From Macrostomum lignano (taxonomy: Eukaryota): a DNA stretch of 64,000 nucleotides. The stretch spans positions 1-64,000 of the forward strand of contig NIVC01000692.1 in assembly GCA_002269645.1 (NCBI GenBank), given 5' to 3'. Shown one piece after another: positions 24,864 through 59,890 of the stretch. The notes beneath the pieces were generated by a model that was not told the DNA's origin, ran no database searches, and saw nothing but the letters and a program-made list of their open reading frames with translations. How positions within the stretch are numbered: the stretch's first letter is position 1; every line of letters starts with the position of its first letter. The translations under genes were made by a program, and so were the position numbers.

Positions 24864-24870
24864 GAGGGTA

Positions 24871-35418: not shown

Positions 35419-35444
35419 CTGCGAAGGGATTATATAGACTGGTG

Positions 35445-35835
35445 CAATCAAGTCCCAACTCTGATGCAATCAAGTTCCAATTATGGTGCAGTTAAGTCCC
35501 AACTCTGGAGCAATCAGGTCCCAACTATGATGCAATCAAGTTCCAATTATGGTGCAGTTAAGTCCCAACTCTGGAGCAATCAGGTCCCAACTATGATGCA
35601 ATCAGGTCCCAACTCTGATGCAATCGAGTCCCAACTATGATGCAGAGAAGTCCCAACTATGGTGCAAGTAAGTCCCAACTCTGATGCAATCAAATCCCAA
35701 CTCTGATGCAATCAAATCTCAACTCTGATGCAATCAAGTCCCAATTATGGTGCAGTTAAGTCCCAACTATGGTGCAATCAAGTCCCAACTATGGTGCAAT
35801 CAAGTCCCAACTATGGTGCAATCAAGTGCTAATTC
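35445..35835. repeat. 22-bp minisatellite (caatcaagtcccaactctgatg)n upstream of JMJD5
   Basis: ~17 tandem variants. Confidence 0.9.
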
Positions 35836-36679: not shown

Positions 36680-38270
36680 TTGTGTCCCTGTTTCCCATGG
36701 GGATGGTGTCCCTGTTTCCCATGGGGATGGTGTCCCTGTTTCCCATGGGGATGGTGTCCCTGTTTCCCATGGGGATGGTGTCCCTGTTTCCCATGGGGAT
36801 GGTGTCCCTGTTTCCCATGGGGATGGTGTCCCTGTTTCCCATGGGGATGGTGTCCCTGTTTCCCATGGGGATGGTGTCCCTGTTTCCCATGGGGATGGTG
36901 TCCCTGTTTCCCATGGGGATGGTGTCCCTGTTTCCCATGGGGATTGTGTCCCTGTTTCCCATGGGGATGGTGTCCCTGTTTCCCATGGGGATTGTGTCCC
37001 TGTTTCCCATGGGGATGGTGTCCCTGTTTCCCATGGGGATTGTGTCCCTGTTTCCCATGGGGATGGTGTCCCTGTTTCCCATGGAGATGGTGTCCCTGTT
37101 TCCTATGGGGATGGTGTCCCTGTTTCCCATGGGGATGGTGTCCCTGTTTCCCATGGGGATGGTGTCTCTGTTTCCCATGGGGATGGTGTCTCTGTTTCCC
37201 ATGGGGATGGTGTCCCTGTTTCCCATGGGGATGGTGTCCCTGTTTCCCATGGGGATGGTGTCCCTGTTTCCCATGGGGATGGTGTCCCTGTTTCCCATGG
37301 GGATGGTGTCCCTGTTTCCCATGGGGATGGTGTCTCTGTTTCCCATGGGGATGGTGTCCCTGTTTCCCATGGGGATGGTGTCCCTGTTTCCCATGGGGAT
37401 GGTGTCCCTGTTTCCCATGGGGATGGTGTCCCTGTTTCCCATGGGGATGGTGTCCCTGTTTCCCATGGGGATTGTGTCCCTGTTTCCCATGGGGATGGTG
37501 TCCCTGTTTCCCATGGGATTGTGTCCCTGTTTCCCATGGGGATGGTGTCCCTGTTTCCCATGGGGATGGTGTCCCTGTTTCCCATGGGGATGGTGTCCCT
37601 GTTTCCCATGGGGATGGTGTCCCTGTTTCCCATGGGGATGGTGTCCCTGTTTCCCATGGGGATGGTGTCCCTGTTTCCCATGGGGATGGTGTCTTTGTTT
37701 CCCATGGGGATGGTGTCCCTGTTTCCCATGGGGATGGTGTCCCTGTTTCCCATGGGGATGGTGTCCCTGTTTCCCATGGGGATGGTGTCCCTGTTTCCCA
37801 TGGGGATGGTGTCCCTGTTTCCCATGGGGATGGTGTCTCTGTTTCCCATGGGGATGGTGTCCCTGTTTCCCATGGGGATGGTGTCCCTGTTTCCATGGGG
37901 ATGGTGTCCCTGTTTCCCATGGGGATGGTGTCCCTGTTTCCCATGGGGATGGTGTCCCTGTTTCCCATGGGGATTGTGTCCCTGTTTCCCATGGGGATGG
38001 TGTCCCTGTTTCCCATGGGGATTGTGTCCCTGTTTCCCATGGGGATTGTGTCCCTGTTTCCCATGGGGATTGTGTCCCTGTTTCCCATGGGGATGGTGTC
38101 CCTGTTTCCCATGGGGATGGTGTCTCTGTTTCCCATGGGGATGGTATCCCTGTTTCCCATGGGGATGGTACCCCTATTTCCCGTGGGGATGGTATCCCTG
38201 TTTCCAATGGGGATGGTATCCCTTTTTGCATGGGGATAGTATCCCTATTTCCTATGGAGATTGGATCCCT
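36680..38270. repeat. 24-bp minisatellite (gtgtccctgtttcccatggggatg)n, ~65 copies
   Basis: Near-perfect array with an internal CCCATGGG palindrome; lacks stop codons, hence the spurious long ORFs on both strands. Confidence 0.96.
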
Positions 38271-38579
38271 GTTTCTCATGACTGAATCCTGCTTTAAAAC
38301 TATAGTATCCCAACTTCTTGGGGATAAATAAGGTCGGAGAAGCGACAGCTCATAAGCTGTGATGCAAACTACGCGCTACAGGTAACAGTAATCAAATGTA
38401 ATATCGAGATCGCAACATTGATTGAAAATTTAGGATCAAATATAATTTTCAGCGACAAATCGATCTCAATGAAAATTTTCAGTCTTAAGGTAAACGCAGC
38501 TCTCTACGATTGCTGCCAATCAGCGCACAATTATTACTAATTTTACTTTTTTCTCTTGAAGTTTGTCTGTCCCGCACAG

Positions 38580-41500
38580 CTACAGCGGGCAGCACCCGCG
38601 TCGCAGGGTGCGAGCAAACAGTGCCGACAGCGTAGAACTCTGTAAATCAGAGCACAGCCAATTCGAAACAAATTTTAAACTCCTTCAGTAATTAAATGCC
38701 TAAATGCTAAAATTTACAACGTTCAAAAAATTATTTAGCTCTCACTTTTTGGTCACCGGAATCGATGCGGTCTGCATCCGACTCCACCTTGTCAGTATCT
38801 GAAGCTGCTCCACTATTAGCTGGCTGATCGACACGCTCTGCATCCGGCTCCACCAGGTCCGTGTCTGAAGCTGCTGCACTATTAGCTGGCTGATCGACAC
38901 GCTCTGCATCCGGCTCCACCTGGTCAGTGTCTGAAGCTGCTCCATTATTAGCTGGCTCTGCATCCGGCTCCACCTGGTTAATACCTGAAGCTGCTGCACT
39001 ATTAGCTGGCTGATCGACACGCTCTGCATCCGGCTCCACCTGGTCAACACCTGCGAATGCACTGGACTGAGATGATTGATCAACACGCTCTGCACCTGGA
39101 TGCACCTGGTCAACGCCTGAAGCTGCTTTACTCTTATCTTGATGATCAACACGTTCCGCATTTAGCTCCACCTGGTCAACACCTGCGACTGCTCTGGACT
39201 GAGATGATTGATCAACACGCTCTACTTCCGGTTCCACCTCGTAAACACCAGATTCCAATCCACTATTAGTTGACTGATCATTAAGCTCTGCACCGGGCTT
39301 CACTTGGTTAATACCTACAGGTGCTTCACTCTTAGCTGGCTGAACGAAATGCCCTGCCTTTGGCTCTACATGGTAAACACCTGTAACTACCCTGGACTGT
39401 GATGATGAGTGATCAACAGGCTCTGCACTTAAATCCACCTTATCAACGCCTGAAGCTGCTACACTCTTAGTTAGCTGATCGATACGCTCTGCATCCGGCT
39501 CCACCTGGTCAGTATCTGAAGCTGCTGCACTATTAGCTGGCTCTGCCTCCGGCTCCACCAGGTCACTGTCTGAAGCTGCTGCACTATTAGCTGGCTCTGC
39601 CTCCGGCTCCACCAGGTCAGTGTCTGAAGCTGCTGCACTATTAGCTGGCTCTGCCTCCGGCTCCACCAGGTCAGTGTCTGAAGCTGCTGCACTATTAGCT
39701 GGCTCTGCCTCCGGCTCCACCAGGTCAGTGTCTGAAGCTGCTGCACTATTAGCTGGCTCTGCCTCCGGCTCCACCTGGTTAATACCTGAAGCTGCTGCAC
39801 TATTAGCTGGCTGATCGACACGCTCTGCATCCGGCTCCACCTGGTCAACACCTGCGACTGCTCTGGACTGAGATGATTGATCAACACGCTCTACTTCCGG
39901 TTCCACCTCGTAAACACCAGATTCCAATCCACTATTAGTTGACTGATCATTAAGCTCTGCACCGGGCTTCACTTGGTTAATACCTACAGGTGCTTCACTC
40001 TTAGCTGGCTGAACGAAATGCCCTGCCTTTGGCTCTACATGGTAAACACCTGTAACTACCCTGGACTGTGATGATGAGTGATCAACAGGCTCTGCACTTA
40101 AATCCACCTTATCAACGCCTGAAGCTGCTACACTCTTAGTTAGCTGATCGATACGCTCTGCATCCGGCTCCACCTGGTCAGTATCTGAAGCTGCTGCACT
40201 ATTAGCTGGCTCTGCCTCCGGCTCCACCAGGTCACTGTCTGAAGCTGCTGCACTATTAGCTGGCTCTGCCTCCGGCTCCACCAGGTCAGTGTCTGAAGCT
40301 GCTGCACTATTAGCTGGCTCTGCCTCCGGCTCCACCAGGTCAGTGTCTGAAGCTGCTGCACTATTAGCTGGCTCTGCCTCCGGCTCCACCAGGTCAGTGT
40401 CTGAAGCAGCTGCACTATTAGCTGGCTCTGCCTCCGGCTCCACCTTGTCAGCGTCTGAAGCTGCTGCACTATTAGCTGGCTGATCGACACGCTCTGCATC
40501 CGGCTCCACCAGGTCAGTGTCTGAAGCTGCTCCATTATTAGCTGGCTCTGCATCCGGCTCCACCTGGTTAATACCTGAAGCTGCTGCACTATTAGCTGGC
40601 TGATCGACACGCTCTGCATCCGGCTCCACCTTGTCAGTATCTGAAGCTGCTCCACTATTAGCTGGCTGATCGACACGCTCTGCATCCGGCTCCACCAGGT
40701 CAGTGTCTGAAGCTGCTCCACTATTAGCTGGCTGATCGACACGCTCTACATCCGGCTCCACCTTGTCAGTATCTGAAGCTGCTCCACTATTAGCTGGCTG
40801 ATCGACACGCTCTGCATCCGGCTCCACCAGGTCCGTGTCTGAAGCTGCTGCACTATTAGCTGGCTGATCGACACGCTCTGCATCCGGCTCCACCTTGTCA
40901 GTATCTGAAGCTGCTGCACTATTAGCTGGCTGATCGACACGCTCTGCATCCGGCTCCACCAGGTCAGTGTCTGAAGCTGCTGCACTATTAGCTGGCTCTG
41001 CCTCCAGCTCCACCAGGTCAGTGTCTGAAGCTGCTGCACTATTAGCTGGCTCTGCCTCCGGCTCCACCAGGTCACTGTCTGAAGCTGCTGCACTATTAGC
41101 TGGCTCTGCCTCCGGCTCCACCAGGTCAGTATCTGAAGCTGCTGCACTATTAGCTGGCTCTGCCTCCGGCTCCACCAGGTCAGTGTCTGAAGCTGCTGCA
41201 CTATTAGCTGGCTGATCGACACGCTCTGCATCCGGCTCCACCTTGTCAGTATCTGAAGCTGCTGCACTATTAGCTGGCTGATCGACACGCTCTGCATCCG
41301 GCTCCACCAGGTCAGTGTCTGAAGCTGCTGCACTATTAGCTGGCTCTGCCTCCAGCTCCACCAGGTCAGTGTCTGAAGCTGCTGCACTATTAGCTGGCTC
41401 TGCCTCCGGCTCCACCAGGTCACTGTCTGAAGCTGCTGCACTATTAGCTGGCTCTGCCTCCGGCTCCACCAGGTCAGTATCTGAAGCTGCTGCACTATTA

Positions 41501-44500
41501 GCTGGCTCTGCCTCCGGCTCCACCAGGTCAGTGTCTGAAGCTGCTGCACTATTAGCTGGCTCTGCCTCCGGCTCCACCAGGTCAGTGTCTGAAGCTGCTG
41601 CACTATTAGCTGGCTCTGCCTCCGGCTCCACCTGGTTAATACCTGAAGCTGCTGCACTATTAGCTGGCTGATCGACACGCTCTGCATCCGGCTCCACCTG
41701 GTCAACACCTGCGACTGCTCTGGACTGAGATGATTGATCAACACGCTCTACTTCCGGTTCCACCTCGTAAACACCAGATTCCAATCCACTATTAGTTGAC
41801 TGATCATTAAGCTCTGCACCGGGCTTCACTTGGTTAATACCTACAGGTGCTTCACTCTTAGCTGGCTGAACGAAATGCCCTGCCTTTGGCTCTACATGGT
41901 AAACACCTGTAACTACCCTGGACTGTGATGATGAGTGATCAACAGGCTCTGCACTTAAATCCACCTTATCAACGCCTGAAGCTGCTACACTCTTAGTTAG
42001 CTGATCGATACGCTCTGCATCCGGCTCCACCTGGTCAGTATCTGAAGCTGCTGCACTATTAGCTGGCTCTGCCTCCGGCTCCACCAGGTCACTGTCTGAA
42101 GCTGCTGCACTATTAGCTGGCTCTGCCTCCGGCTCCACCAGGTCAGTGTCTGAAGCTGCTGCACTATTAGCTGGCTCTGCCTCCGGCTCCACCAGGTCAG
42201 TGTCTGAAGCTGCTGCACTATTAGCTGGCTCTGCCTCCGGCTCCACCAGGTCAGTGTCTGAAGCTGCTGCACTATTAGCTGGCTCTGCCTCCGGCTCCAC
42301 CTTGTCAGCGTCTGAAGCTGCTGCACTATTAGCTGGCTGATCGACACGCTCTGCATCCGGCTCCACCAGGTCAGTGTCTGAAGCTGCTCCATTATTAGCT
42401 GGCTCTGCATCCGGCTCCACCTGGTTAATACCTGAAGCTGCTGCACTATTAGCTGGCTGATCGACACGCTCTGCATCCGGCTCCACCTTGTCAGTATCTG
42501 AAGCTGCTCCACTATTAGCTGGCTGATCGACACGCTCTGCATCCGGCTCCACCAGGTCAGTGTCTGAAGCTGCTCCACTATTAGCTGGCTGATCGACACG
42601 CTCTACATCCGGCTCCACCTTGTCAGTATCTGAAGCTGCTCCACTATTAGCTGGCTGATCGACACGCTCTGCATCCGGCTCCACCAGGTCCGTGTCTGAA
42701 GCTGCTGCACTATTAGCTGGCTGATCGACACGCTCTGCATCCGGCTCCACCTTGTCAGTATCTGAAGCTGCTGCACTATTAGCTGGCTGATCGACACGCT
42801 CTGCATCCGGCTCCACCAGGTCAGTGTCTGAAGCTGCTGCACTATTAGCTGGCTCTGCCTCCAGCTCCACCAGGTCAGTGTCTGAAGCTGCTGCACTATT
42901 AGCTGGCTCTGCCTCCGGCTCCACCAGGTCACTGTCTGAAGCTGCTGCACTATTAGCTGGCTCTGCCTCCGGCTCCACCAGGTCAGTATCTGAAGCTGCT
43001 GCACTATTAGCTGGCTCTGCCTCCGGCTCCACCAGGTCAGTGTCTGAAGCTGCTGCACTATTAGCTGGCTGATCGACACGCTCTGCATCCGGCTCCACCT
43101 TGTCAGTATCTGAAGCTGCTGCACTATTAGCTGGCTGATCGACACGCTCTGCATCCGGCTCCACCAGGTCAGTGTCTGAAGCTGCTGCACTATTAGCTGG
43201 CTCTGCCTCCAGCTCCACCAGGTCAGTGTCTGAAGCTGCTGCACTATTAGCTGGCTCTGCCTCCGGCTCCACCAGGTCACTGTCTGAAGCTGCTGCACTA
43301 TTAGCTGGCTCTGCCTCCGGCTCCACCAGGTCAGTATCTGAAGCTGCTGCACTATTAGCTGGCTCTGCCTCCGGCTCCACCAGGTCAGTGTCTGAAGCTG
43401 CTGCACTATTAGCTGGCTCTGCCTCCGGCTCCACCAGGTAAGTGTCTGAAGCTGCTGCACTATTAGCTGGCTCTGCCTCCGGCTCCACCTTGTCAGCGTC
43501 TGAAGCTGCTGCACTATTAGCTGGCTGATCGACACGCTCTGCATCCGGCTCCACCAGGTCAGCGTCTGAAGCTGCTGCACTATTAGCTGGCTGATCGACA
43601 TGCTCTGCATCCGGCTCCACCAGGTCAGTGTCTGAAGCTGCTCCACTATTAGCTGGCTGATCGACACGCTCTGCATCCGGCTCCACCAGGTCAGTGTCTG
43701 AAGCTGCTGCACTATTAGCTGGCTGATCGACACGCTCTGCCTCCGGCTCCACCAGGTCAGTGTCTGAAGCTGCTGCACTATTAGCTGGCTCTGCCTCCGG
43801 CTCCACCTTGTCAGCGTCTGAAGCTGCTGCACTATTAGCTGGCTGATCGACACGCTCTGCATCCGGCTCCACCTGGTCAGTGTCTGAAGCTGCTCCATTA
43901 TTAGCTGGCTCTGCATCCGGCTCCACCTGGTTAATACCTGAAGCTGCTGCACTATTAGCTGGCTGATCGACACGCTCTGCATCCGGCTCCACCTGGTCAA
44001 CACCTGCGACTGCTCTGGACTGAGATGATTGATCAACACGCTCTACTTCCGGTTCCACCTCGTAAACACCAGATTCCAATCCACTATTAGTTGACTGATC
44101 ATTAAGCTCTGCACCGGGCTTCACTTGGTTAATACCTACAGGTGCTTCACTCTTAGCTGGCTGAACGAAATGCCCTGCCTTTGGCTCTACATGGTAAACA
44201 CCTGTAACTACCCTGGACTGTGATGATGAGTGATCAACAGGCTCTGCACTTAAATCCACCTTATCAACGCCTGAAGCTGCTACACTCTTAGTTAGCTGAT
44301 CGATACGCTCTGCATCCGGCTCCACCTGGTCAGTATCTGAAGCTGCTGCACTATTAGCTGGCTCTGCCTCCGGCTCCACCAGGTCACTGTCTGAAGCTGC
44401 TGCACTATTAGCTGGCTGATCGACACGCTCTGCATCCGGCTCCACCAGGTCAGTGTCTGAAGCTGCTGCACTCTTAGCTGGCTGATCGACACGCTCAGCA

Positions 44501-47500
44501 TCCGGCTCCACCAGGTCAGTATCTGAAGCTGCTCCACTATTAGCTGGCTGATCGACACGCTCTGCATCCGGCTCCACCTTGTCAGTATCTGAAGCTGCTG
44601 CACTATTAGCTGGCTGATCGACACGCTCTGCATCCGGCTCCACCAGGTAAGTGTCTGAAGCTGGTCCACTATTAGCTGGCTCTGCCTCCGGCTTCACCTT
44701 GTCAGCGTCTGAAGCTGCTGCACTATTAGCTGGCTGATCGACACGCTCTGCATCCGGCTCCACCAGGTCAGTATCTGAAGCTGCTCCACTATTAGCTGGC
44801 TGATCGACACGCTCTGCATCCGGCTCCACCTTTTCAGTATCTGAAGCTGCTCCACTATTAGCTGGCTGATCGACACGCTCTGCATCCGGCTCCACTAGGT
44901 CAGCGTCTGAAGCTGCTTCACTATTAGCTGGCTGATCGACACGCTCTGCATCCGGCTCCACCTTGTCAGTATCTGAAGCTGCTGCACTATTAGCTGGCTG
45001 ATCGACACGCTCTGCATCCGGCTCCACCTGGTCAGTGTCTGAAGCTGCTCCATTATTAGCTGGCTCTGCATCTGGCTCCACCAGGTCAGTATCTGAAGCT
45101 GGTCCACTATTAGCTGGCTCTGCATCTGGCTCCACCAGGTCAGTATCTGAAGCTGCTGCACTATTAGCTGGCTGATCGACACGCTCTGCATCCGGCTCCA
45201 CCAGGTCAGTGTCTGAAGCTGCTCCACTATTAGCTGGCTGATCGACACGCTCTGCCTCCGGCTCCACCAGGTCAGTATCTGAAGCTGCTCCACTATTAGC
45301 TGGCTGATCGACACGCTCTGCATCCGGCTCCACCTTGTCAGTATCTGAAGCTGCTGCACTATTAGCTGGCTGATCAACCCGCTCTGCATCCGGCTCCACC
45401 AGGTCAGTATCTGAAGCTGCTCCACTATTAGCTGGCTGATCGACACGCTCTGCATCCGGCTCCACCTTGTCAGTATCTGAAGCTGCTGCACTATTAGCTG
45501 GCTGATCGACACGCTCTGCATCCGGCTCCACCTGGTCAGTGTCTGAAGCTGCTCCATTATTAGCTGGCTCTGTATCCGGCTCCACCTGGTTAATACTTGA
45601 AGCTGCTGCACTATTAGCTGGCTGATCGACACGCTCTGCATCCGGCTCCACCTTGTCAGTATCTGAAGCTGCTCCACTATTAGCTGGCTGATCGACACGC
45701 TCTGCATCCGGCTCCACCTTTTCAGTATCTGAAGCTGCTCCACTATTAGCTGGCTGATCGACACGCTCTGCATCCGGCTCCACTAGGTCAGCGTCTGAAG
45801 CTGCTCCACTATTAGCTGGCTGATCGACACGCTCTGCATCCGGCTCCACCTTGTCAGTATCTGAAGCTGCTGCACTATTAACTGGCTGATCGACACGCTC
45901 TGCATCCGGCTCCACCTTGTCAGTATCTGAAGCTGCTGCACTATTAGCTGGCTCTGCATCTGGCTCCACCAGGTCAGTATCTGAAGCTGGTCCACTATTA
46001 GCTGGCTCTGCATCTGGCTCCACCAGGTCAGTATCTGAAGCTGCTGCACTATTAGCTGGCTGATCGACACGCTCTGCATCCGGCTCCACCAGGTCAGTGT
46101 CTGAAGCTGCTGCACTCTTAGCTGGCTGATCGACACGCTCAGCATCCGGCTCCACCAGGTCAGTATCTGAAGCTGCTCCACTATTAGCTGGCTGATCGAC
46201 ACGCTCTGCATCCGGCTCCACCTTGTCAGTATCTGAAGCTGCTGCACTATTAGCTGGCTGATCGACACGCTCTGCCTCCAGCTTCACCAGGTAAGTGTCT
46301 GAAGCTGGTCCACTATTAGCTGGCTCTGCCTCCGGCTTCACCTTGTCAGCGTCTGAAGCTGCTGCACTATTAGCTGGCTGATCGACACGCTCTGCATCCG
46401 GCTCCGCCAGGTCAGTGTCTGAAGCTGCTGCACTATTAGCTGGCTGATCGACACGCTCTGCCTCCGGCTCCACCTTGTCAGTATCTGAAGCTGCTCCACT
46501 ATTAGCTGGCTGATCGACACGCTCTGCATCCGGCTCCACCAGGTCAGTATCTGAAGCTGCTGCACTATTAGCTGGCTGATCGACACGCTCTGCCTCCAGC
46601 TCCACCAGGTAAGTGTCTGAAGCTGGTCCACTATTAGCTGGCTCTGCCTCTGGCTCCACCTTGTCAGCGTCTGAAGCTGCTGCACTATTAGCTGGCTGAT
46701 CGACACGCTCTGCATCCGGCTCCACCAGGTCAGTATCTGAAGCTGCTCCACTATTAGCTGGCTGATCGACACGCTCTGCATCCGGCTCCACCAGGTCAGT
46801 ATCTGAAGCTGCTGCACTATTAGCTGGCTGATCGACACGCTCTGCATCCGGCTCCACCAGGTCAGTGTCTGAAGCTGCTGCACTATTAGCTGGCTGATCG
46901 ACACGCTCTGCATCCGGCTCCACCAGGTCAGTATCTGAAGCTGCTGCACTATTAGCTGGCTGATCGACACGCTCTGCATCCGGCTCCACCTTGTCAGTAT
47001 CTGAAGCTGCTGCACTATTAGCTGGCTGATCGACACGCTCTGCATCCGGCTCCACCTGGTCAGTGTCTGAAGCTGCTCCATTATTAGCTGGCTCTGTATC
47101 CGGCTCCACCTGGTTAATACTTGAAGCTGCTGCACTATTAGCTGGCTGATCGACACGCTCTGCATCCGGCTCCACCTTGTCAGTATCTGAAGCTGCTGCA
47201 CTCTTAGCTGGCTGATCGACACGCTCTGCATCCGGCTCCACCTTTTCAGTATCTGAAGCTGCTCCACTATTAGCTGGCTGATCGACACGCTCTGCATCCG
47301 GCTCCACTAGGTCAGCGTCTGAAGCTGCTTCACTATTAGCTGGCTGATCGACACGCTCTGCATCCGGCTCCACCTTGTCAGTATCTGAAGCTGCTGCACT
47401 ATTAGCTGGCTGATCGACACGCTCTGCATCCGGCTCCACCTGGTCAGTGTCTGAAGCTGCTCCATTATTAGCTGGCTCTGCATCTGGCTCCACCAGGTCA

Positions 47501-50500
47501 GTATCTGAAGCTGGTCCACTATTAGCTGGCTCTGCATCTGGCTCCACCAGGTCAGTATCTGAAGCTGCTGCACTATTAGCTGGCTGATCGACACGCTCAG
47601 CATCCGGCTCCACCAGGTCAGTGTCTGAAGCTGCTGCACTCTTAGCTGGCTGATCGACACGCTCAGCATCCGGCTCCACCAGGTCAGTATCTGAAGCTGC
47701 TCCACTATTAGCTGGCTGATCGACACGCTCTGCATCCGGCTCCACCAGGTCAGTATCTGAAGCTGCTGCACTATTAGCTGGCTGATCGACACGCTCTGCA
47801 TCCGGCTCCACCTGGTCAGCGTCTGAAGCTGCTCCATTATTAGCTGGCTCTGCATCCGGCTCCACCTGGTTAATACTTGAAGCTGCTGCACTATTAGCTG
47901 GCTGATCGACACGCTCTGCATCTGGCTCCACCAGGTCAGTATCTGAAGCTGCTGCATTCTTAGCTGGCTGATCGACACGCTCAGCATCCGGCTCCACCTT
48001 GTCAGTATCTGAAGCTGCTGCACTATTAGCTGGCTGATCGACACGCTCTGCATCCGTCTCCACCTTGTCAGTGTCTGAAGCTGCTCCACTAGTAGCTGGC
48101 TGACCGACACGCTTTGAACCCGGCTCTACATGTTGAAAACCTGCAGGCGTTTTACTTTTCTTTAAAGTGAAATTCTCCTCATTCAGGCTTAAACCTTCAG
48201 TCTCTGAGGTAAGTTTTCTATCCTCAGTATCCTCCCTGAGAAAACATTCTGACATTAAAGTCGGAAGCTGTCGGAATGACAGATTATTTTCTTCAGCATC
48301 CTTACTGACTGAACCTTCGGTGTCTGATTTCAAAGTCTCTTCCTGACAGTCTATTCCCAGTGCTAGCGAAGTTTGGGCATTTAAAGCGGAAGTATTCGTC
48401 ATAGGGTCCATTACGCGCAAAACTTTCGTCTTTGAAGTCAGATTCACTTTCTCTGTGTCAATGACGCGTGGAAATTCGGTCTCTAATTCTTTTGAAATTT
48501 CTATCGCTGAAGTTTGAGCATCTTCTGCGGCGTCAATCAGGCTTGAACCTTTGGACTCAGGGGTTTTATTCAGTTCTTCGGCATCTTTGACGCGTAGAAC
48601 GTTGATACTTGATGTTGGAATTCTTCCATCTGCTGAACTCTGAACATCTGCTGTAATAGGAGACGTTTTCTTAGTGTTTATCATGCCTATACGCGAATTT
48701 TCAGCCGCTGACGTTGACTTCTGTTTCTTCGCGGTACTATTCATCACACATAAGTCCTCCGGCGTTTCTTTGGAATTTTCTACGTGTGATCTCTGAATCG
48801 GAATGTTTGAAGGATAGAGGCCTTCAGTCTCTGATGTCGGGGCTGAACCCGTAGTTTCCGATGCGTGAGAAATTTCGGTCTCTACAGTCGGTGTCTCATC
48901 TAGGCTTACTGAAAAATTATGCTCGTATAGGATTTTCATTCCAATTGTTTGAGAAACCGTCTCTAATGTTGGAGTCTCTTTCAAAGTGCCCGTCACGTAT
49001 AAATCTTGAGTCTGTGAAGCTGGACTCTCATCCTCTGTATCTTCTGCGTCGGTCCCAGACGCCAGATTCTCTTTCGTTCTGCTTACTACGGATGAATTTT
49101 CAGTCACTGAAATCAGTGATTCTTCGTCGGAGTCTATCACGCGTGAAACTTCGGCCTTTCGAGTAAGCGTCAGTTTCGCAATGTCATTCGCATTTAAAAT
49201 GCTCTCAAAAGTCGGCTTTTGTTTAGGGAAGCTCTGAATTTCGTGATTGCAACTTCTGGAAAGTGTTAAAGACGCCTTATCTGACGTGGGTCTGTCTTCA
49301 TCGATTACCTTAGCCTGTAAAGTTTGCGTCTCAAAAGTAGGAATTTCTTCGCAGCATTCGCCTACAGAAGCGAATTGGTTCTTAGAAGTCTGTTCATCTT
49401 CTACACTACCCTTAGTAGATGCTGGAGCTTCGATTTGTGAAACCTCTTTCAACACCGCGATTTTAGGAAACATCCGAGAAGGCAAAGTGGGCTCGTGCTC
49501 AACAGTGCCTCTAGTCTGTGGGGTGAAGATATCCTCTAAAGCGCTTTGCGTACGTAAAACATCCGACTGTAAGTTCGGCTCGCTTTCAACAGCACTGGCA
49601 AAAATGTCAGCTTCAAAAAATGACTCAACTTGCATCACAGCCTTCATGTGCGGAAGTTTAGTTTTACAAGCCTGAGACTCACTGACTGGTGAAACATTGG
49701 CCGAAAAATTTGGATTCTTCGCAACAAAACTAGCCAAAATTGAATGTTCAGCAATAGAGCTTCGCCTCTCTTCAACATTATCCATCACATGCGTATGTAA
49801 GTGAGAGGTCGGCTTCTCTTCTAAATCCCTCTTCGGCAATATGAGTTTGCTCCCAGCATTCGAGTCTCTTTCTTTCATATGTGAAACTTCTAATTCCAAA
49901 TTCGACTCACTGTACTTATCCTGGTAAGCTTTGGTCTCAGAAGCCAGCATTGCTCTCTGAACAAACTCTGTAGTTAAAACATCTGTCTCAGTAGTGGACG
50001 CACCTTTAATTATGCTTCCGTCTGAAGAGGCTTGGATTTCTGACGCCCAGTTGTTTTTCAATGTTGTCTTTGATGCTACAAGGGACTTTCTTGCTGAGTT
50101 CGGGGTTTCCTCCATGACATCCTGCACTTTGGACGCTTTAGCGTCAGGCAAGGGCACCTCTACAGCAATACCAGTTTCGAGTGATGCGATTTTCGCTCCT
50201 AAAGCTTGTCTGCCATCAACGATAGAATCGCAGTGCGAACTTTCAATCTTCGATATCGGTAGGTTCTCTTCAATACCTTCAACTGTGGCGGGGGCAGGTT
50301 CCGTCAAAGTCAGCTTTTCATCATTAGCCTCATTTAGAGAAGCCCCGGCTTGCGAAATAAGCCTGCTTTCAACCATAGCATTTTCGCTTGAAACTTGGCT
50401 TCGTGATAGCGACCCGTCTTTGGTAGTATTGCTACTAGTAGGAAAATCGTATTCCTCCCGATGCACTGCGGATGACAGGAAGCTTGTCCTCAGACTTTCA

Positions 50501-53444
50501 TCTCCAGCAAATTGGTCCACTTTACTAGTCAAATGGATACTCAAATTCAGTTTCGCACTATTATCAGCTTTGATTGCACAGGTTCCGCGTTTGTAGTTGC
50601 AACTACTTCTATCTTTATTTCCTTGATTGGAGGAGCAAAGCAGCTGTTCCAGCTGTTGTCTGTTGTTGGAGTTCGCACTGGCACTGCTGACACAATCGGT
50701 GACAGCATCAGAATCTCCACCGGGCTTAATCGAAACAATTGACCGGATTTCAGACGATTCTTCACTCGAAATCTCATCAAAGGTAGCAGCTTCGTATTTA
50801 ATTCTCTCCTCAGAATCAAAATACTTTGTGCTTGGAGCCAGTAGCAGACTCAGGTCAACGTCCGTTTGATGAGTGCTTGCAACTGATCGGCCAACTTTTG
50901 CACTAGAACCGAATAATGGTCAGAATCGTCATTAAGAACGGTCAAAAAGCCGTCCTCTGCCAACTCAACAGCATTTGAGTCTGTTGTGAGAACTTTCAGC
51001 TCCCTAGCTTTTGATATGCTTTCAATAACTTCCGCTCCTTTGCGAGACGATTGTTGGGTGAGATCAGTGGCTGCTACAAGCTCACCAACTCGGGGCTCTG
51101 TGGGAACTTCAGACTGGTTAGCAGACTTTGTCCCATTGGAAACTTGTAGAGTTGTTGGGTCCTTGTCAGCTGAACTGCTATGCGAAATCAAATCCACGAA
51201 TGAGGACACAACGGAACTAGCATCTTCAGGGATACTGGCCTGGGTGCAACTTCTGGCAGAATTTCCTGAACCAGGTCTTGATGCAGCTGAATTTGGTTCC
51301 ACTTCAACTCCATGCGGCTTTCCAATGAGCTCTTCTGGTTCGCTATAATCCAAAGCCTGTCTAGAAATTTCTAAATTCCTGCGCGCCTCCGCCTCATCAG
51401 AATTCGGTTTATCAATGTAAGCCGCCGCCGCACGTGCTTTGCTTTCGGTCAACTGGTTGGTTTTACCTGCAGCTTGAAGCGTCTCTTCCTGTATAAATAG
51501 GTCGTAGTTATTATATCGGTATGTAAATATCCTTCATTCAAGCTATTCATTTTACAACAATAAATATCATAAACGAATTACTCACTCGAATAATCTGGAG
51601 CAGACTTTTGATCGCGGTCTCGCCAAGGTACTCTTTGTTCAAATCGATTCGATTCCTGGCATTGCGAAAAATTCTGTTGGCAACGGCTTTTAGCTAAAAA
51701 AAATTTCGTAAGATTTTTTTTTCTTTGCTAGCTCTAAACTATCCTGACACGGTACAATTTGCCCATGCACTAACCATGACGGTTGCCTCCACTGGATTCG
51801 GTTCCAGCTCTGTTTCAGACAACAGATCCTCCAATCTGGCTGAAGTCCGCTCGTGCTCCTCTGCAGCAGAGTTCAAGAGTTCCAACAGTTTTCGCTGCGT
51901 TTCCATAGCAACCGAATAGGCCAGCTCCATCTAAAGACGAAACGGTAAAAGCACTACAGTCAAGTGCAGTTTGAGGGTTTTCGAAAAGACACAGTGTAAG
52001 AAGAACTAAAATTTAACGTCCTCAATCACCTGCTCTCCAGTTGCTTTCAGTTGAAACAGCAACTCGGTGGAATCGGCGCCAAACGCCGCTGACGAAGCCT
52101 CAGTCTGGCAGTCTGGCAGTCTGGCCAGCTGCTCAGAGAGGCGGCGACACTCCGACTCAAGCTCGGGTAGGCGCTCCGCCGCCTGATAGACTGACACCTG
52201 CAATTTCGGCCGGTGAAGATAATCAGTGAATTAGCGAGAACAAATGTGCCCTGTATGCATCTAGCGATCGTACTGGTGAGCATAAACAGACACATTAACA
52301 ATTTTTACTGAAGAGTCCGAGAATTGCCCCGAAAACTTTTCCCTGCAATTTCCCGCCTGAAAGGCTGAAAGGTAGTCATGCACTCACTGAAAAGCAGCTG
52401 GTTCCAAACAGCTTTCAGCATCAGTCACAGGGATCTGCGCCTCTGTAGATGGTGTCTCCTGTTACTGACACCCCACTGTTACTGGCAAGATACTTGAGGC
52501 AGGCCTGAAAGCTTCATAGACTTTCAGCCTCATAGCCCCGTTTGAAGACCATTAGGCATTTTCATGACGGTAAACATTTGGCACAACATTCCTCAATCTT
52601 GCCTGCATTATATTGTCAGCAAGATTCAAATTAACTACAGCCAAGATAATCGAGAGTTATTAAAGGATTTCGACGAAAATTCTTCAATCTCAACCAGTCC
52701 TAGTTAACTAGCCCAAGGTGTCAAGAACACCTGGTCAGTACACATCAACTTTCTAAAAAGTCCGCACTGAAAACTGCCTATTCTGCCTCTCCAGTATTGT
52801 GAATGCGAAGCACTTCATCAGCGAATGCCCCGCCTTTACTCGGAACAGACTAACTATATCGACCCGAACCCCGATCTCTCCTGTATTTTCAGACAGCTCG
52901 TCCGCTACCAAAGTGCTACTGGTCCGTAACATTGAGGACGGACACAGGCACTACCCGGATCTCCCTGCTGCATCCGAATCGGAGCCACTGCTGCTAGGGG
53001 TGGGTGGAATAGCATGGCTCTCCTAACCAACTGGCAGTTCTACTGTAAAATAACTGTTGCCGAGTGCGGAGCTACGGGGGCCTCAACGCACCTGGTCCAG
53101 CAGTAGTCGCAGTGAGCACTCCTGCTCAGCAACTTGGTCTCTCAGCATCTCGTTGCGCTGCATCAGGCCGGCAAGACCGCGCAGCAGGTCCGCACTCGGC
53201 AGGTCGGGGGCATCGACGCGCAGCCGCCCAAGTCGGCATTGCTCAGCTTCAACCGGCTTGAGTCGCTCTGTCAGCTGTTGAAGGCGCCGTTGAGCGCGCC
53301 AAGCGCCGCTGCGTAATTCAACGCCAAGTAGGCGCGCTTCTTCGGCCAGCTGGCTGACCGCTTCATCAATATTGGCACCAGAGTCCGCTGGCGCTTCCGC
53401 CATCAGGGAGAAGAGCCGTGCACAAGTGCTGGAGCTATTTATTG
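38580..53444 (-). CDS. Giant (~4,500 aa) protein: coiled-coil N-terminus with FKBP15/WAFL-like C-terminal helical motif, Ser/Thr/Glu-rich region, ~3,100 aa of acidic 18/22-aa repeats, short terminal exon
   Basis: Exons 53444-53092, 52197-52030, 51930-51775, 51693-51586, 51488-38746, 38639-38580; all downstream junctions GT-AG phase 0. One -1 frame discordance at ~50850-50915. ORF 38731-50544 is 3937 aa uninterrupted. LKAVANRIFRNARNRIDLNKEYLGETAIKSLLQIIREETLQ resembles FKBP15 VKKIMNQVFQSLRREFELEESYNGRTILGTIMNTIKMVTLQ (recalled sequence, not a computed alignment). Confidence 0.8.
38760..48110 (-). repeat. Coding tandem repeat: 66-bp (AASDTDLVEPDAERVDQPANSA) and 54-bp (AASDTDLVEPEAEPANSA) units with higher-order duplications
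   Basis: Units visible in the 3937 aa ORF; a diverged ~110 aa block (ERIDQLTKSV...VAGVDQV) occurs four times; by-product ORF coordinates repeat with 1857-bp and 669-bp offsets. Confidence 0.95.
52700..52960 (+). mobile_element. Possible degenerate 3' fragment of a non-LTR retrotransposon ORF2
   Basis: Reads CLFCLSSIVNAKHFISECPAF, a CxxC..H....C zinc-knuckle typical of LINE ORF2 C-termini; upstream frame broken. Confidence 0.35.
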
Positions 53445-56483: not shown

Positions 56484-58388
56484 ATGGCTGACGCTAGCAA
56501 GAAGCGGTCAAAAAAGAGGACAGTGAATCCGGCCGAGAAGGAGGAAATCGTCAAGAAGAAGCTGACCGAGTTCTACTCTAACGAAATCTACAAGGATCCG
56601 ATCTTGAAGAAGAGTTTCAACTCAGAATCTGCTATATTTCTGGGCGCTGGAGCATTCGGTCACGTGTTTCTCATCACGGCCAAGAAGGATGTCACATTCG
56701 ACGATCTCGAAAGCATTACTGTCACACTGGGCAGGGACGAGAAGCACGAATACCTCAATCAGGTAGAGGCCCTGAAGGCGCCCAATAAATCGGACGTGGT
56801 ACTGAAGAAAAACCAAGGCGTGGCCATGAAATGCGAAACAGCGTTTCTCTTCCAAGTGGAGAACTTCCCCATTACACCTAAGAACCTACCAGACGCAGAC
56901 CCCGAGAGATTCTCTGTTTACAAGGAGTACAACACGCTGAACAACATTTTTTCTAGGTAATATTTCAAGTTATTTATTAAATTTTCAATTTATATTTCTA
57001 TGGACATAGCAATAGTTGCTTGGAGCCGGTCGTACTTGCATTTCCTTATTAGGTTCGGCTACAAAGATACCCGGGGCTTCACTCGACCGTACGCGTTTGG
57101 TCACCTTGGCGACTACACCTACATGCATATTGAGAGCTCGAAAAAGACCAAAATGTACGGCTTTCACTTTCTCATGTTCGAAATCTGCGGCCCGGATATG
57201 GAGGACATGATGGAAATCTGCAGCTACAATTGCCGTCAAAACGAGCAGCGTCTGTCAACTCGGTAGGATTCTTAATTTTTCTTTTCTTTGTACACTTTCG
57301 GCGATACTATAGATTTTACTTAACAGCAACCAATATGCAAAACTCCCCGCTGATGTCAGCACCGTCTTCATGGTTGGGGATCAGTTCTTCGCCAGGATGC
57401 AGTGCATTCAGGACACGGCTCTAGGCCTGACGCACAATGATCTCAAGTGCGATCAGCTGATGACTGGCAAAGGTGAGAACGGCAACACTATCTACCTGAT
57501 CGATTATGGTCTTGTGACAAAGTACAAGGAGACCTGGACGTCTACTCTGGTGGCTCCGCTGGGCAACCGCAGGTGGGCGCCTCGCTCCAACCACCAGATG
57601 GCGCCGCGGACTCCGCTGTGTGAGATTGAGTCCTCCTGCTACGTGCTGCTGCGACTGCTCAAGAACCACTTCCCCTGGGACGGCATGTTCGATAGGCAGA
57701 TGATGAAGCTTCAAGAGCTGAAGGACCGCGGTGAGGAGGACATGACTATGAAGACTGGTGATGAGGTTCTGTACGAGGAAAAGCAGTACCTTTGGTTCTT
57801 TCTCAAGAAGGAGTCCGGCAAAAAGCTTGGCCATCTCACTGAGGATGTTGAGCAAGAAATAGAAAAGTACAAAGACTTTTTTGAAGAGCGAAACGACAAA
57901 TGGGGGGACGGCGGCTCCCAGATGAAGGACATGATGGTGGACATGGCCAAGATGGGCGACCCCAACTACTGCGGCTTCGTTGAAAAGAAAATCGACTTCG
58001 CCGACGTGAACTACATCGGCATCCGTAAGCACCTGCTGAACATCTTTGACCTGTCGATGTACGCTCACAACCTTGAAACTGCGGGCCTTACCGGCCTTAT
58101 GAAGCTGAATGTCGAAAACTTCTTCAAAGAAAACAAGGAGAAAAAGCAGCAGAGGACGGAATGCGGCCGGCCGGTGTACTATTACTTCCCGAGGGCGAGC
58201 ATCACTGCTACTTTGAGTGGTTCTGTCGGAGCAAGGACTTCTGGGAGAACAAGCCGGAGTACTGGCACAAACTGCTGGCGAATCGAGACGAGCTGGCCGA
58301 AATGCTGCGCAAGCGGCAAGCCGGCGCTAAGGCCGGTGGCGCCTCGCCCGCGCCGGCCGCGTCAGCCGCCGCGCCGGATAAGAAATGA
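56484..58388 (+). CDS. Divergent casein kinase 1 (CK1/TTBK/VRK group)-like protein kinase, 3 exons, probable 1-bp homopolymer frameshift near 58187
   Basis: Exons 56484-56956, 57053-57262, 57327-~58388 (phase-2 GT-AG introns). G-loop LGAGAFGHVF, VAMKCE, FLMFEICGPDMEDM (CK1 VMELLGPSLEDL), THNDLKCDQ, IYLIDYGL, LGNRRWAPRSNH, EIESSCYVLLRLLKNHFPWDG. Adding one C at ttccc(c)gag joins YYYFP to EGEHHCYFEWF...APDKK*. Confidence 0.85.
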
Positions 58389-58749
58389 CAACCAGACTGA
58401 GGACTTCTGTTGTTCACCACTCCCTCTGAAACTTTCTGCTGGGCGAACCCAAAGCTGGTGTGGGATCAGTTTCTGTGTCTCATTTTTAACGGTTTTTCTG
58501 CAAGCAAAACCTTTTGAAGAAACCTGTTCTGGTTGGCCATGTTAAGAGGATCGAGTGGCTCTAAAAATTATTGCGAGAAAGAAAGAATTGAGAACAAAAT
58601 TGCTTGCTCATTTTATTTTATAATTCTTCAGCAAATACAAGAATTCCCCGGAGCATTGTATTGCAATTCTTAAAAATTTTCACTTCGTTTCATTTTAAGT
58701 GCTTTTTAGTAGCGAAGAAACTTATGATATCTAATGAGCTAGAGAGTTC

Positions 58750-59860
58750 GTGAGTGAGGTCATGAGTGAGGTCATGAGTGGCTACATAAGTTAGTGCATG
58801 AGTGATTAAATGAGTGAGTGCATGAGTGAGTGCATGAATGAGTGCATGAGTGAGTGCATGAGTGAGTGCATGAGTGAGTGCATGAGTGAGTGAGTGCATA
58901 AGTGAGTGCATAAGTGAGTGCATGAGTGAGTGCATGAGTGAGTGCATGAATGAGTGCATGAGTGAGTGAGTGCATAAGTGAGTGCATAAGTGAGTGCATG
59001 AGTGAGTGCATGAGTGAGTGCATGAGTGAGTGAGTGCATAAGTGAGTGCATAAGTGAGTGCATGAGTGAGTGCATGAGTGAGTGCATGAGTGAGTGCATG
59101 AGTGAGTGAGTGCATGAGTGAGTGCATGAGTGAGTGCATGAGTGAGTGCATGAGTGAGTGCATGAGTGAGTGCATGAATGAGTGCATGAGTGAGTGAGTG
59201 CATAAGTGAGTGCATAAGTGAGTGCATGAGTGAGTGCATGAGTGAGTGCATGAGTGAGTGCATGAGTGAGTGAGTGCATAAGTGAGTGCATGAGTGAGTG
59301 CATGAGTGAGTGCATGAATGAGTGCATGAGTGAGTGAGTGCATAAGTGAGTGCATAAGTGAGTGCATGAGTGAGTGCATGAGTGAGTGCATGAGTGAGTG
59401 CATGAGTGAGTGCATGAGTGAGTGAGTGCATAAGTGAGTGCATGAGTGAGTGCATGAGTGAGTGCATGAGTGAGTGCATGAGTGAGTGCATGAATGAGTG
59501 CATGAGTGAGTGAGTGCATAAGTGAGTGCATAAGTGAGTGCATGAGTGAGTGCATGAGTGAGTGCATGAGTGAGTGCATGAGTGAGTGCATGAGTGAGTG
59601 AGTGCATGAGTGAGTGCATGAGTGAGTGAGTGCATAAGTGAGTGCATGAGTGAGTGCATGAGTGAGTGCATGAGTGAGTGAGTGCATAAGTGAGTGCATG
59701 AGTGAGTGCATGAGTGAGTGCATGAGTGAGTGCATGAGTGAGTGCATGAATGAGTGCATGAGTGAGTGAGTGCATAAGTGAGTGCATAAGTGAGTGCATG
59801 AGTGAGTGCATGAGTGAGTGCATGAGTGAGTGCATGAGTGTGTGCATGAGTGAGTTCATT
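58750..59860. repeat. (GAGT)2-3 GCAT simple-sequence satellite
   Basis: gagtgagtgcat units with periodic gcataa/gaat variants; degenerate continuation at 60645-60775 beyond the LINE. Confidence 0.95.
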
Positions 59861-59890
59861 TGTTAGTTCATGAGTTTATGAGTTCATGAG

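Follow-up and report, generated by a model that had tools for sequence, protein, structure and literature searches.

The minus strand of Macrostomum lignano contig NIVC01000692.1 carries a protein-coding gene whose tail end is an in-frame 66-bp minisatellite, and this array in turn holds recent higher-order duplications of 1.86 kb. Within the window (the whole stretch of 64,000 nucleotides that we analysed), four phase-0 GT-AG exons (53433-51586) are followed by a single terminal exon (51488-38731). On balance, we consider it somewhat more likely than not that a coding minisatellite has expanded an already acidic, disordered tail, giving rise to what we infer to be a coiled-coil-anchored polyanionic tether of ~4,500 aa.

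Reading from the 5′ end of the gene (all exons on the minus strand), exon A (53092-53433) matches models P0001, P0002 and P0023 exactly; the transcript-model 5′ end lies at 53433 and the likely ATG at 53403-53401, with 104 helical coding codons leading to the donor CAG/gtgcgt. Exon B (52030-52197; ttgcag/GTGTCA ... GAGCAG/gtgatt), which is included in P0002, supplies 56 helical codons in phase 0/0, and exon C (51775-51930) a further 52, again in phase 0/0. The last of the short exons, exon D (51586-51693; 36 codons, phase 0/0; LKAVANRIFRNARNRIDLNKEYLGETAIKSLLQIIR), encodes an FKBP15-like helix. The initial annotation of this DNA had described four short phase-0 exons, and this holds; all have GT-AG borders, with the exons positioned just outside the interval 38746-51488 that it assigned to the feature; it had missed the minus strand, a break of frame at 50908 and the competing model P0001. 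Beyond exon D, the giant terminal exon (exon E; 38731-51488, 12,758 bases including the stop codon at 38733-38731) begins EETLQAAG and is built from three parts: a non-repeat part (48112-51488; ~1,116 codons that are rich in Ser, Glu and Thr, carry a net charge of -69 and contain no domain known to Pfam), the minisatellite (38770-48111), and a unique C-terminus, RIDSGDQKVRAK, with its stop codon (38731-38769), an end that is identical in a sister copy of the locus (L001).

As assembled in the window, the giant exon is split between two frames: its first ~580 bases (51488-50850, with a stop at 50850) are in a different frame from the big frame, which opens only at 50919 and runs to 38734. Thus the ~12.7-kb exon first proposed stands as an exon (51488-38731) but not as one ORF. 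The 3,937-codon stop-free ORF that was claimed within it is indeed listed by the ORF program (38731-50544; 3,937 aa), the full stop-free frame being longer still (38734-50919, 4,062 codons). The break maps to an apparent 1-base loss at 50905-50911 (minus strand; TCGGTTCTAG in the window, TCGGTTTCTAG in L001) that is confined to the window copy; in a pairwise alignment, L001 carries one extra T at 50908, uniting both giant-exon frames. L001, P0002 and P0023 all cross this point without a frame break, read-through sequences having DHYSV/SSAKV or DHYSG/SSAKV at the junction (one ML2 copy has Gly there). Because single-base indels outnumber substitutions by 7:3 between the window copy and L001 (in 5.3 kb, the 3 substitutions leaving dN/dS between the two genomic copies not computable), and because three other sequences read through, the loss is probably a consensus error, the indel-heavy differences being typical of long reads. 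A short intron spanning the change of frame was rejected: the two frames overlap by only ~70 nt, and in the sister copies a single additional base suffices for uninterrupted reading. Once the lost base is bridged, no in-frame stop lies ahead of the array.

The array itself comprises 151 units (TRF: period 66 bp, 151 copies, 82% matches) with the consensus RVDQPANSAAASDTDLVEPDAE; 94 units are of 22 aa, 53 of 18 aa (lacking RVDQ) and 4 of 23 aa, making about 3,114-3,126 aa in total. Unit lengths are therefore only 66, 54 and 69 bp, all multiples of three and in frame with the unique flanks, as in the tandem-unit definition of a coding minisatellite (VNTR exon). Ala (20.9%), Asp (13.8%), Glu (11.2%), Ser (10.3%), Val (9.1%) and Pro (9.1%) dominate the repeat, Cys and Trp are absent, and Phe occurs 5 times in 3,126 residues; the net charge is -623, or ~-5 per 22-aa unit, which bears out the >140 units and ~3,100 acidic residues reported at the outset. 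A peptide quoted in that first description occurs 9 times in the array; VDQPANSAAASDTDLVEPDAER, from the repeat, and VDQPANSAAASDTDKVEPDAER are among the peptides predicted for this protein.

Superimposed on the 66-bp period is a higher-order one. A 31-unit block (41480-43439, minus strand; 1,857 bp, 619 aa) recurs near-exactly 1,857 bp downstream, with exact runs of 1,174 and 785 bp between the copies by shift analysis and a string of unit lengths that repeats likewise. A divergent 5-unit block (RIDQLTKS...PVDHSSSQ...HFVQPAKS...LNDQSTNS...RVDQSSQS) is present on the same strand in four copies (43975-44307, 42012-41680, 40155-39823 and 39486-39154), as against one in the sister copy. The two arrays differ about two-fold in size, with 151 units in the window and ~80 in L001, so that copy number varies in the manner of a coding minisatellite, while the flanks are 99.9% identical. 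Of the 48 and 41 unit types found, 19 are common to both copies, and the start, end and type of unit repertoire agree. Simple and tandem repeats make up 15% of the genome (PMC5730564).

What is maintained in this sequence can be judged from its reading frames. The 4,062-codon coding frame has 0 stops, compared with 41 and 440 in the other minus frames and 116-168 in the plus frames; upstream of the array, 936 unique stop-free codons share its frame (1,116 non-repeat codons with the lost base bridged), and downstream a further 12. Across 48127-50870, the other frames contain 18-82 stops per 914 codons. Inside the array the consensus unit is open in a second frame too, and an open frame across a pure 66-bp array is cheap. 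Among distinct unit types, 10 carry a stop in this alternative frame (~7 expected) and 0 in the coding frame (~3.5 expected), a lack of stops that is only modestly improbable (~0.03) because the array is young. Changes within the array are evenly spread over the codon positions (40/50/48), from which only frame and composition look maintained, and synonymous and non-synonymous changes number 22:116 for 16.3:49.7 sites; the resulting dN/dS is not below 1, as is expected for junk and for composition-only constraint alike. A 296-bp satellite elsewhere in the window, with units of 283-297 bp and 63-105 stops in every frame, keeps no frame.

These data bear directly on the strongest alternative, namely that the repeat is a functionless expansion tolerated in a dispensable disordered tail, or part of a decaying duplicate, any activity residing in the coiled coil and helix. 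Even codon-position variation, with a dN/dS-like ratio at or above 1, is in keeping with such an origin, and so are the two-fold difference in copy number with rapid turnover of units between copies, the very recent growth evident from near-exact 1.86-kb internal duplications, the other expanding tandem arrays that crowd the window, the frame break at 50908 in the window copy, and the redundant copies of a recently polyploid genome (PMC5730564). We nevertheless regard it as rather unlikely, though a serious contender: frame has been kept over 151 units and three unit lengths, which is true neither of the adjacent non-coding frame nor of the 296-bp satellite; the unique C-terminus and stop are identical in both copies; and the 50908 break, given its indel-rich surroundings and the three sequences that read through it, resembles a consensus error.

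A second alternative, which we judge improbable, questions the assembly in place of the biology: how large the array is and how its parts are ordered (151 units, the divergent block in four copies, 1.86-kb duplications) could in part be an artefact of noisy PacBio reads drawn from at least two near-identical subgenome copies. The genome was assembled with Canu from early PacBio reads and polished with Pilon, with a redundancy of 180-312 Mb (PMC5730564). Clustered 1-base deletions are seen in L001, a model from an older assembly joins two copies of the gene end to end via a collapsed array, and mis-joins can yield near-exact duplications of 1,857 bp. Set against this, the 9.3 kb of array is free of frame errors, which would not be expected of a badly resolved consensus, PacBio reads at that time often exceeded 10 kb, and the agreement of array start, end and repertoire type between the two copies has already been described.

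Turning to expression, the M. lignano annotation was built by genome-guided assembly of RNA-seq data (PMC5730564), and its models agree with the initial proposal that the giant exon is transcribed and spliced to the coiled-coil exons: both P0002 (= BOX15_Mlig002709g1) and UniProt entry A0A1I8HM22 make this join. P0002 and P0023 connect exons A to E and reach 0.6-1.1 kaa into the giant exon, the P0002-type transcript-based models deriving from the near-identical sister copy, and the array itself contains, on this strand, additional gene calls derived from transcripts. On the matter of inclusion or skipping, which had been raised from the outset, the picture is mixed, since P0002 and P0023 include the giant exon but P0001, an annotated model at this very locus, skips both it and exon D, linking the donor of exon C to 35418, the first acceptor of a KDM8/JMJD5-like gene (33189-35418, minus strand) that is the downstream neighbour and is complete (ARM_KDM8_N + Cupin_8). 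A single transcript model covering the whole array was not found, nor was protein-level evidence, and M. lignano papers and supplementary data yielded no expression entry for Mlig002709 or Mlig024268. The window is crowded with other expanding tandem arrays. A 24-bp minisatellite (36682-38280), ~450 bp 3′ of the stop and open in at least four frames, is probably 3′UTR or flank; an annotated 654-aa ‘gene’ covers it.

A further alternative is that the array is mostly absent from the mature protein, with short isoforms (by a P0001-like splice, or an internal splice or early 3′ end within the giant exon) being the functional ones. This we consider quite improbable, even with a splice from exon C to a gene 16 kb downstream, upstream exons that are all phase 0 and so can be skipped without change of frame, transcript models that extend no more than 0.6-1.1 kaa into the giant exon, and no AATAAA or ATTAAA within 2.3 kb 3′ of its stop. 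The P0001 fusion looks chimeric, or the product of read-through, because its partner is a complete KDM8 orthologue and because, in the sister locus, that gene's own model has its 5′ end at the very acceptor concerned; truncated models are in any case expected from short-read assemblies, which are unable to span 9 kb of repeats; and transcript-derived calls exist within the array, ahead of which the bridged frame has no stop. The gene, in short, is real and poorly annotated, its public models being fragments, a KDM8-like chimera and a two-copy concatenation, and its true product is probably a protein of about 4,500 aa that appears in none of them.

A clue to the likely origin of this protein lies at the junction of exon D with the giant exon. 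The initial annotation likened the end of the coiled coil to the FKBP15 C-terminal helix, and at the level of sequence this similarity is statistically real. An alignment without gaps over 48 aa, of exon D plus the first giant-exon codons against the mammalian motif exon plus the start of the acidic exon has 11 identical residues and a Smith-Waterman score of 69 (z ~9; 0/5,000 shuffles reach 69), and a profile of the motif made from mammals only ranks exon D best of 1,276 six-frame pieces of the window, with E = 0.047. In both flatworm and mammals the motif exon has 36 codons in phase 0/0, the intron position is identical, and the exon that follows opens with xxTLQ and codes for a tail that is acidic and disordered. 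The mammalian motif, with its structure taken from mammalian contigs, reads VKKIMNQVFQSLRGEFELEESYxGRxxLGTIMNTIK/MVTLQLL, the intron falling after the 36th codon. These comparison contigs, unnamed in the database, we tentatively take to be FKBP15 from their likeness to the human sequence and from their fit to a published domain order. For WAFL, that order runs from WH1 through FKBP and the coiled coil (about 500-950) to an acidic end (PMC2850539).

The family link as first drawn therefore survives for the helix, its phase and its intron position, but not for the remainder of the protein, in which no FKBP or WH1 domain was found and for which large-scale searches gave no homologue. Searching the window with FKBP12 by tblastn gave a best E of 0.28, in a microsatellite region; an approximate probe for the FKBP15 N-terminus (WH1/FKBP), a provisional guide, gave 7.5 against the window and L001; neither the 64-kb window nor the 10 kb that precede the sister copy yielded an FKBP or WH1 exon; and Pfam FKBP_C is absent from P0002 and P0023. 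With MAEAP as their first residues, the protein models enter the coiled coil at once, and an acidic/Trp terminus of FKBP15 type (...DDDDDIDWLG, as seen in L003) is absent, the flatworm protein ending ...GDQKVRAK. What is shared with FKBP15/WAFL/FKBP133 is a conserved helix closing a predicted coiled coil, then an acidic disordered C-terminal exon; what differs is a coiled-coil-type region of ~260 aa as opposed to ~450 in WAFL, a tail of ~4,240 aa (three quarters of it tandem repeat) as opposed to ~300 in FKBP15, the C-terminus, and the WH1 and FKBP domains. By its predicted architecture, then, the flatworm protein is not an FKBP15. That it is a true orthologue, with exons for WH1 and FKBP at some greater distance upstream that partial models have missed, is very improbable in spite of the 5′-partial flags on P0001 and P0002 and the FKBP15-like helix/tail junction, as no FKBP/WH1 similarity occurs in the sequence just listed, an opposite-strand gene lies only ~3 kb upstream, in-frame stops are found just upstream of exon A, and the UniProt models, like P0023 and P0024, begin at MAEAP.

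An ortholog search had been suggested for this protein: a word-indexed search of 5.8 billion proteins matched only M. lignano's own models, as did a HMMER search of 1.84 billion representative proteins, which gave no significant family match. This silence does not refute the FKBP15 link, because the libraries apparently contain exon-sized ORF fragments only and no full-length vertebrate FKBP15. Where the initial annotation had the repeat ‘grafted’ onto a coiled coil, we instead favour expansion in place, given that the FKBP15 helix already precedes an acidic disordered exon.

The composite protein of ~4,500 aa (~468 kDa, net charge ~-705) would consist of a ~260-aa helical N-terminus, the 48-aa helix over the exon D/giant-exon junction, and a ~4,240-aa domain-free tail. 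AF2, run on the single sequence, places helices over residues 8-295 at low confidence (mean pLDDT 59). Neither a signal peptide nor a transmembrane segment is present (maximum 19-aa hydropathy 1.12), and in charge-hydropathy terms the repeats fall on the natively unfolded side (0.412 against a boundary of 0.485), with the non-repeat tail at the boundary. When the coiled-coil exons, the tail outside the repeats and 711 aa of repeat sequence were scanned against Pfam, nothing came near any gathering score; PDB sequence searches gave no match, and no named protein bearing this repeat turned up in protein and Pfam searches, in line with the earlier remark that no such described protein was known. 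Three specific candidates were rejected: the apolipoprotein A1/A4/E 22-mer (PF01442), which scores 19.2 bits against a cut-off of 90 and shares only a 22-residue, Pro-punctuated periodicity; a CH/Dynactin-domain protein, as the UniRef names of A0A1I8HM22 and A0A1I8I7D2 have it, neither domain being detected when P0023 and P0024 were run through hmmscan with E values as high as 10 allowed; and a secreted biomineral or Ca-binding acidic protein, there being no signal peptide.

Closer parallels are found among known repeat proteins. Coding minisatellites, or VNTR exons, occur in mucins, involucrin and the like; the flatworm array shares with them a multiple-of-three unit, higher-order repeats, a difference in copy number and an apparent constraint on frame and composition, at 151 units lies at the upper end of their range, and differs from the mucin type in belonging to a protein that is predicted to be cytosolic (no signal peptide) and lacks a Ser/Thr/Pro mucin composition. 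Titin PEVK and other giant entropic-spring repeats are Pro/Glu/Val-rich, ~20-28 aa long, unfolded and present in hundreds, their number tuning length. The likeness here is of unfolded short repeats in bulk within a giant exon and protein, but the flatworm repeat is rich in Asp, Ala and Ser, has no Lys, no flanking Ig/Fn3 and no known muscle context, and Pfam revealed no sequence relation to PEVK. FAM21, for its part, binds FKBP15. It has 21 LFa motifs in an acidic unstructured tail of >1,000 aa, with repeat number setting the avidity of binding (WASHC2; PMC3374753), and so resembles our protein in joining a small folded or helical head to a long, acidic, unstructured and multivalent tail; its motifs, however, are dispersed and individually diverged, whereas the flatworm array is young and tandem, and the LFa motif ([LIVM]F-acidic-[LIVM]F; L-F-[D/E]3-10-L-F) has no regex match in the 4,500-aa composite.

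Bringing these strands together, the preferred reading, expansion of an existing tail into a tether, would run as follows. An ancestral FKBP15-type acidic tail was most likely enlarged in place, because the FKBP15 helix, too, precedes an acidic disordered exon across an intron at the same position; a multiple-of-three unit would have multiplied through recombination between misaligned copies (unequal recombination) or through slippage during replication, with selection acting on reading frame and on an acidic, Pro-punctuated composition and not on individual residues. The coiled coil would dimerise and anchor the protein, possibly because the conserved helix binds a partner, likewise conserved, on endosomes or the cytoskeleton. 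The polyanionic, unfolded tail might serve as a flexible tether of great length, a spacer or an entropic brush, its reach scaling with repeat number, or, alternatively, as a low-affinity sink for cations or basic proteins. More speculatively, and in our estimation improbably, a flatworm lineage could have made of the short acidic tail behind an FKBP15-type helix a hypervariable polyanionic tether of 1,700-3,100 residues. The number of minisatellite copies would set its length, which would not be the same in each subgenome copy, so that nature would have supplied a graded set of entropic spacers anchored to endosomes or cytoskeleton; the conserved 48-aa helix would be the ancient, separable module by which FKBP15 binds its partner.

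The giant acidic repeat exon represents an extreme of something already known, not a new kind. If the FKBP15 link holds, nothing of FKBP15 but the 48-aa helix and its intron would have been conserved as far as flatworms, and this helix would become the candidate partner-binding core of a protein that is still poorly understood in mechanistic terms; the tail would have grown ten-fold through a coding minisatellite, with frame and composition alone kept. The gene is a helpful example of how disordered regions evolve, albeit one that changes no concept.

The window is bases 1–64000 of NIVC01000692.1 in the Macrostomum lignano assembly Mlig_3_7 (GCA_002269645.1): a protein search pointed to this flatworm, and the annotated gene occupies the same range in its record as in the window. 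Reading along the minus strand, we see four short coiled-coil exons, A (53433, with its ATG at 53403, to 53092), B (52197–52030), C (51930–51775) and D (51693–51586), each in phase 0 with canonical AG/GT borders, followed by a giant terminal exon that starts at 51488, again in phase 0 behind a canonical acceptor. The initial annotation had proposed four such exons, which we confirm, albeit just outside its interval. Its splicing of the giant exon to them is borne out by BOX15_Mlig002709g1, a partial model from a sister locus (L001; NIVC01000769.1:261815–286255), whose junctions are identical to those of the window exons and which continues from exon D into the giant exon for ~830 residues; the Mlig_3_7 annotation is a genome-guided RNA-seq assembly (PMC5730564). 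An older ML2-assembly model, A0A1I8HM22 (2,738 aa), covers the entire non-repeat part plus the first repeat units; it is an artefact in which two gene copies were concatenated, the non-repeat part appearing twice in head-to-tail order across a repeat that has collapsed. A current Pfam scan did not bear out the automatic names of this model and of A0A1I8I7D2 (‘Calponin-homology domain-containing’, ‘Dynactin domain-containing’).

The ~12.7 kb coding exon originally proposed has the right length but, as assembled, is split into two frames: that from 51488 ends at a stop at 50850, and the giant frame does not open until 50919. In L001 one extra T at 50908 joins both frames. The two loci are 99.9% identical in exons and introns, a 5.3-kb comparison giving 3 substitutions and 7 indels of a single base (1 in the window, 6 in L001); the six deletions of L001 cluster in the stretch matching window 49041–48130 (L001 about 14441–15300). 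At the 50908 site the two copies within A0A1I8HM22 read DHYSG/SSAKV and DHYSV/SSAKV. We infer, short of proof, that the break is a consensus error affecting a position where the copies vary, and that the gene is not dead; the assembly was built with Canu on PacBio reads and polished with Pilon, and is highly redundant, with simple or tandem repeat making up 15% (PMC5730564). With this base counted, the giant exon has 12,759 bases (4,252 codons) and the composite protein ~4,500 aa (~468 kDa, pI ~4.05, net charge ~-705).

The 3937-codon ORF reported previously is indeed listed as 3,937 aa (38731..50544, minus strand), but the stop-free frame extends further, to 4,062 codons (38734..50919), the final 3,126 residues of which are tandem repeats. 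TRF describes the array (38771..48126) as 151 copies of a 66-bp period with 82% matches; the initial count of more than 140 units in a stop-free frame is thus upheld, all 151 units parsing with zero stops as 22 aa (94), 18 aa (53) or 23 aa (4). The 22-aa consensus is RVDQPANSAAASDTDLVEPDAE, the 18-aa units being those without RVDQ; the 147 units of these two lengths comprise 48 different peptides and 58 different DNA sequences. The repeat region (A 20.9, D 13.8, E 11.2, S 10.3, V 9.1, P 9.1%) contains neither Cys nor Trp and carries a net charge of -623.

An array with a multiple-of-3 unit stays open at no cost: a 24-bp minisatellite (36682–38280, 66.8 copies, ~450 bp 3′ of the giant ORF stop) is open for >500 aa in at least four frames, and the 66-bp consensus unit is itself open in a second minus-strand frame. 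That second frame has 10 distinct stop-bearing unit types against ~7 expected (from ~138 inferred changes), the coding frame 0 against ~3.5 (P ~0.03). The coding frame has 0 stops, against 41 and 440 for the two remaining frames of the minus strand and 116–168 for those of the plus strand. Unit lengths are limited to 54, 66 or 69 bp in 151/151, and the array shares its frame with unique sequence on both sides: 936 stop-free codons upstream (1,116 with the one-base loss bridged) and a 12-codon end downstream. As an internal control, a 296-bp plus-strand satellite (1–11585, continuing to 12819; 39.6 copies, 96% match) also has a protein-like translation, with unit lengths of 283–297 bp and 63–105 stops in every frame. 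Its unit translates to ~99 highly charged residues (...DEDVRHQIDLFDDKVLEDREASEIEEDLPPMRKEDELKAPEREREREAARQEELVSHRRRERRRRDERARRDIAR) that have no Pfam match, and its final open piece (11164–12819, 552 codons) continues past the array into unique sequence. The satellite could represent a second giant repeat exon, one that has decayed or been poorly assembled, or else have arisen from coding sequence.

When unit haplotypes are joined in a minimum spanning tree, the changes are spread evenly over codon positions 1/2/3 (40/50/48), with a synonymous:non-synonymous ratio of 22:116 for 16.3:49.7 sites, so we see no purifying selection on array residues; what is maintained is at most the frame and the composition. 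A higher-order repeat of 31 units (1,857 bp) is duplicated almost exactly, and a divergent 5-unit block occurs four times. The L001 array (about 15300–20793) is about half as long as the one in the window, with ~80 units and one divergent block; 19 unit types are common to both, the flanks are 99.9% identical and the unique C-terminus is identical. The array is either young and unstable or else partly mis-assembled.

A competing model at the window locus, BOX15_Mlig024268g3, contains exons A to C and splices exon C to 35418, across a 16-kb ‘intron’ holding the giant exon; the case for isoforms lacking that exon rests mainly on this model. Position 35418 is also the first acceptor of a complete minus-strand KDM8/JMJD5-like gene (35418–33189; ARM_KDM8_N and Cupin_8), which at the sister locus forms a separate model starting at the same acceptor; we read the competing model as a read-through or chimera. 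Its junction from 51775 to 35418 would fit a trans-splice acceptor used in cis, or chimeric assembly.

Pfam, PDB and two large protein searches (libraries evidently without full-length vertebrate FKBP15) gave no family assignment. For a query that we take to be human FKBP15, matches were confined to exon-sized, unnamed ORFs in mammalian DNA. In these fragments, and in L003, a mammalian contig of 13 kb, the motif exon has exactly 36 codons in phase 0/0 (VKKIMNQVFQSLRGEFELEESYxGRxxLGTIMNTIK); the exon after it starts MVTLQLLNQ and is long, acidic and disordered, and the gene ends ...FGDDDDDDDIDWLG. This order appears to agree with the arrangement published for WAFL/FKBP15, in which WH1 and FKBP domains precede a coiled coil and then an acidic end (PMC2850539). 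Flatworm exon D likewise has 36 codons in phase 0/0, and the acidic exon after it starts EETLQAAG. Smith–Waterman alignment of a mammalian 50-mer to the 1,374 non-repeat flatworm residues gave an ungapped 48-aa match spanning the same intron position with a score of 69, reached by 0/5,000 shuffles (31 ± 4, maximum 57), and a profile built from 11 motif exons of mammalian origin placed exon D at the top of 1,276 six-frame window pieces (E = 0.047; runner-up 3.8). On this shuffle-tested alignment, profile rank and shared intron position, the helix-and-tail module is credibly homologous to that of FKBP15. By architecture the gene is not FKBP15, because there is no FKBP or WH1 exon within the window or in the 10 kb that precede the sister copy, the upstream neighbour is divergently oriented ~3 kb away, and A0A1I8HM22 and A0A1I8I7D2 begin at MAEAP. 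Of the FKBP15-like coiled coil first described, a link limited to this one module is what remains credible.

That neighbour (56484–58545, plus strand; 622 aa, 570 aa in the sister locus) is annotated, has no Pfam domain and is directly followed by a (TGAGTGAGTGCA)n array. Micro- and minisatellites (periods 12–94 bp) are unusually dense in the window (14036–15019, 15596–16351, 17026–17335, 18365–18587, 19105–19932, 20721–21077, 24870–25194, 32942–33125, 33804–34701, 35440–35827, 58751–59875), several giving ORFs >200 aa on both strands; a 14-bp array lies inside an intron of the KDM8-like gene and a 22-bp array immediately upstream of its first acceptor. An annotated 654-aa ‘gene’ (43044–36546) spanning the 24-bp minisatellite is probably a longest-ORF artefact on a 3′UTR or fragment transcript; its weak Pfam match to T4 gp5 was rejected as a repeat artefact. 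Downstream lie two ordinary minus-strand genes, a purine or uridine phosphorylase-family gene (26041–26706; PNP_UDP_1, E = 9e-25) and an annotated CAP-domain gene (about 28900–30700).

The gene is real but poorly annotated, its repeat expansion extreme yet mechanistically ordinary. No signal peptide or transmembrane segment is predicted in the protein; the N-terminal 300 aa are predicted to be helical, with low confidence, and by the charge–hydropathy boundary the repeats classify as unfolded. In vertebrates, endosomal targeting of WAFL is reportedly mediated by its coiled coil (PMC2850539), and FKBP15 binds the tail of FAM21 (PMC3374753). The flatworm repeats are not FAM21-type LFa motifs. 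The most economical reading would be a cytosolic protein, anchored through its coiled coil and with the conserved helix as a putative partner-binding element, in which an ancestral acidic tail may have been enlarged in place by a coding minisatellite to give what would function as a very long polyanionic tether or spacer.
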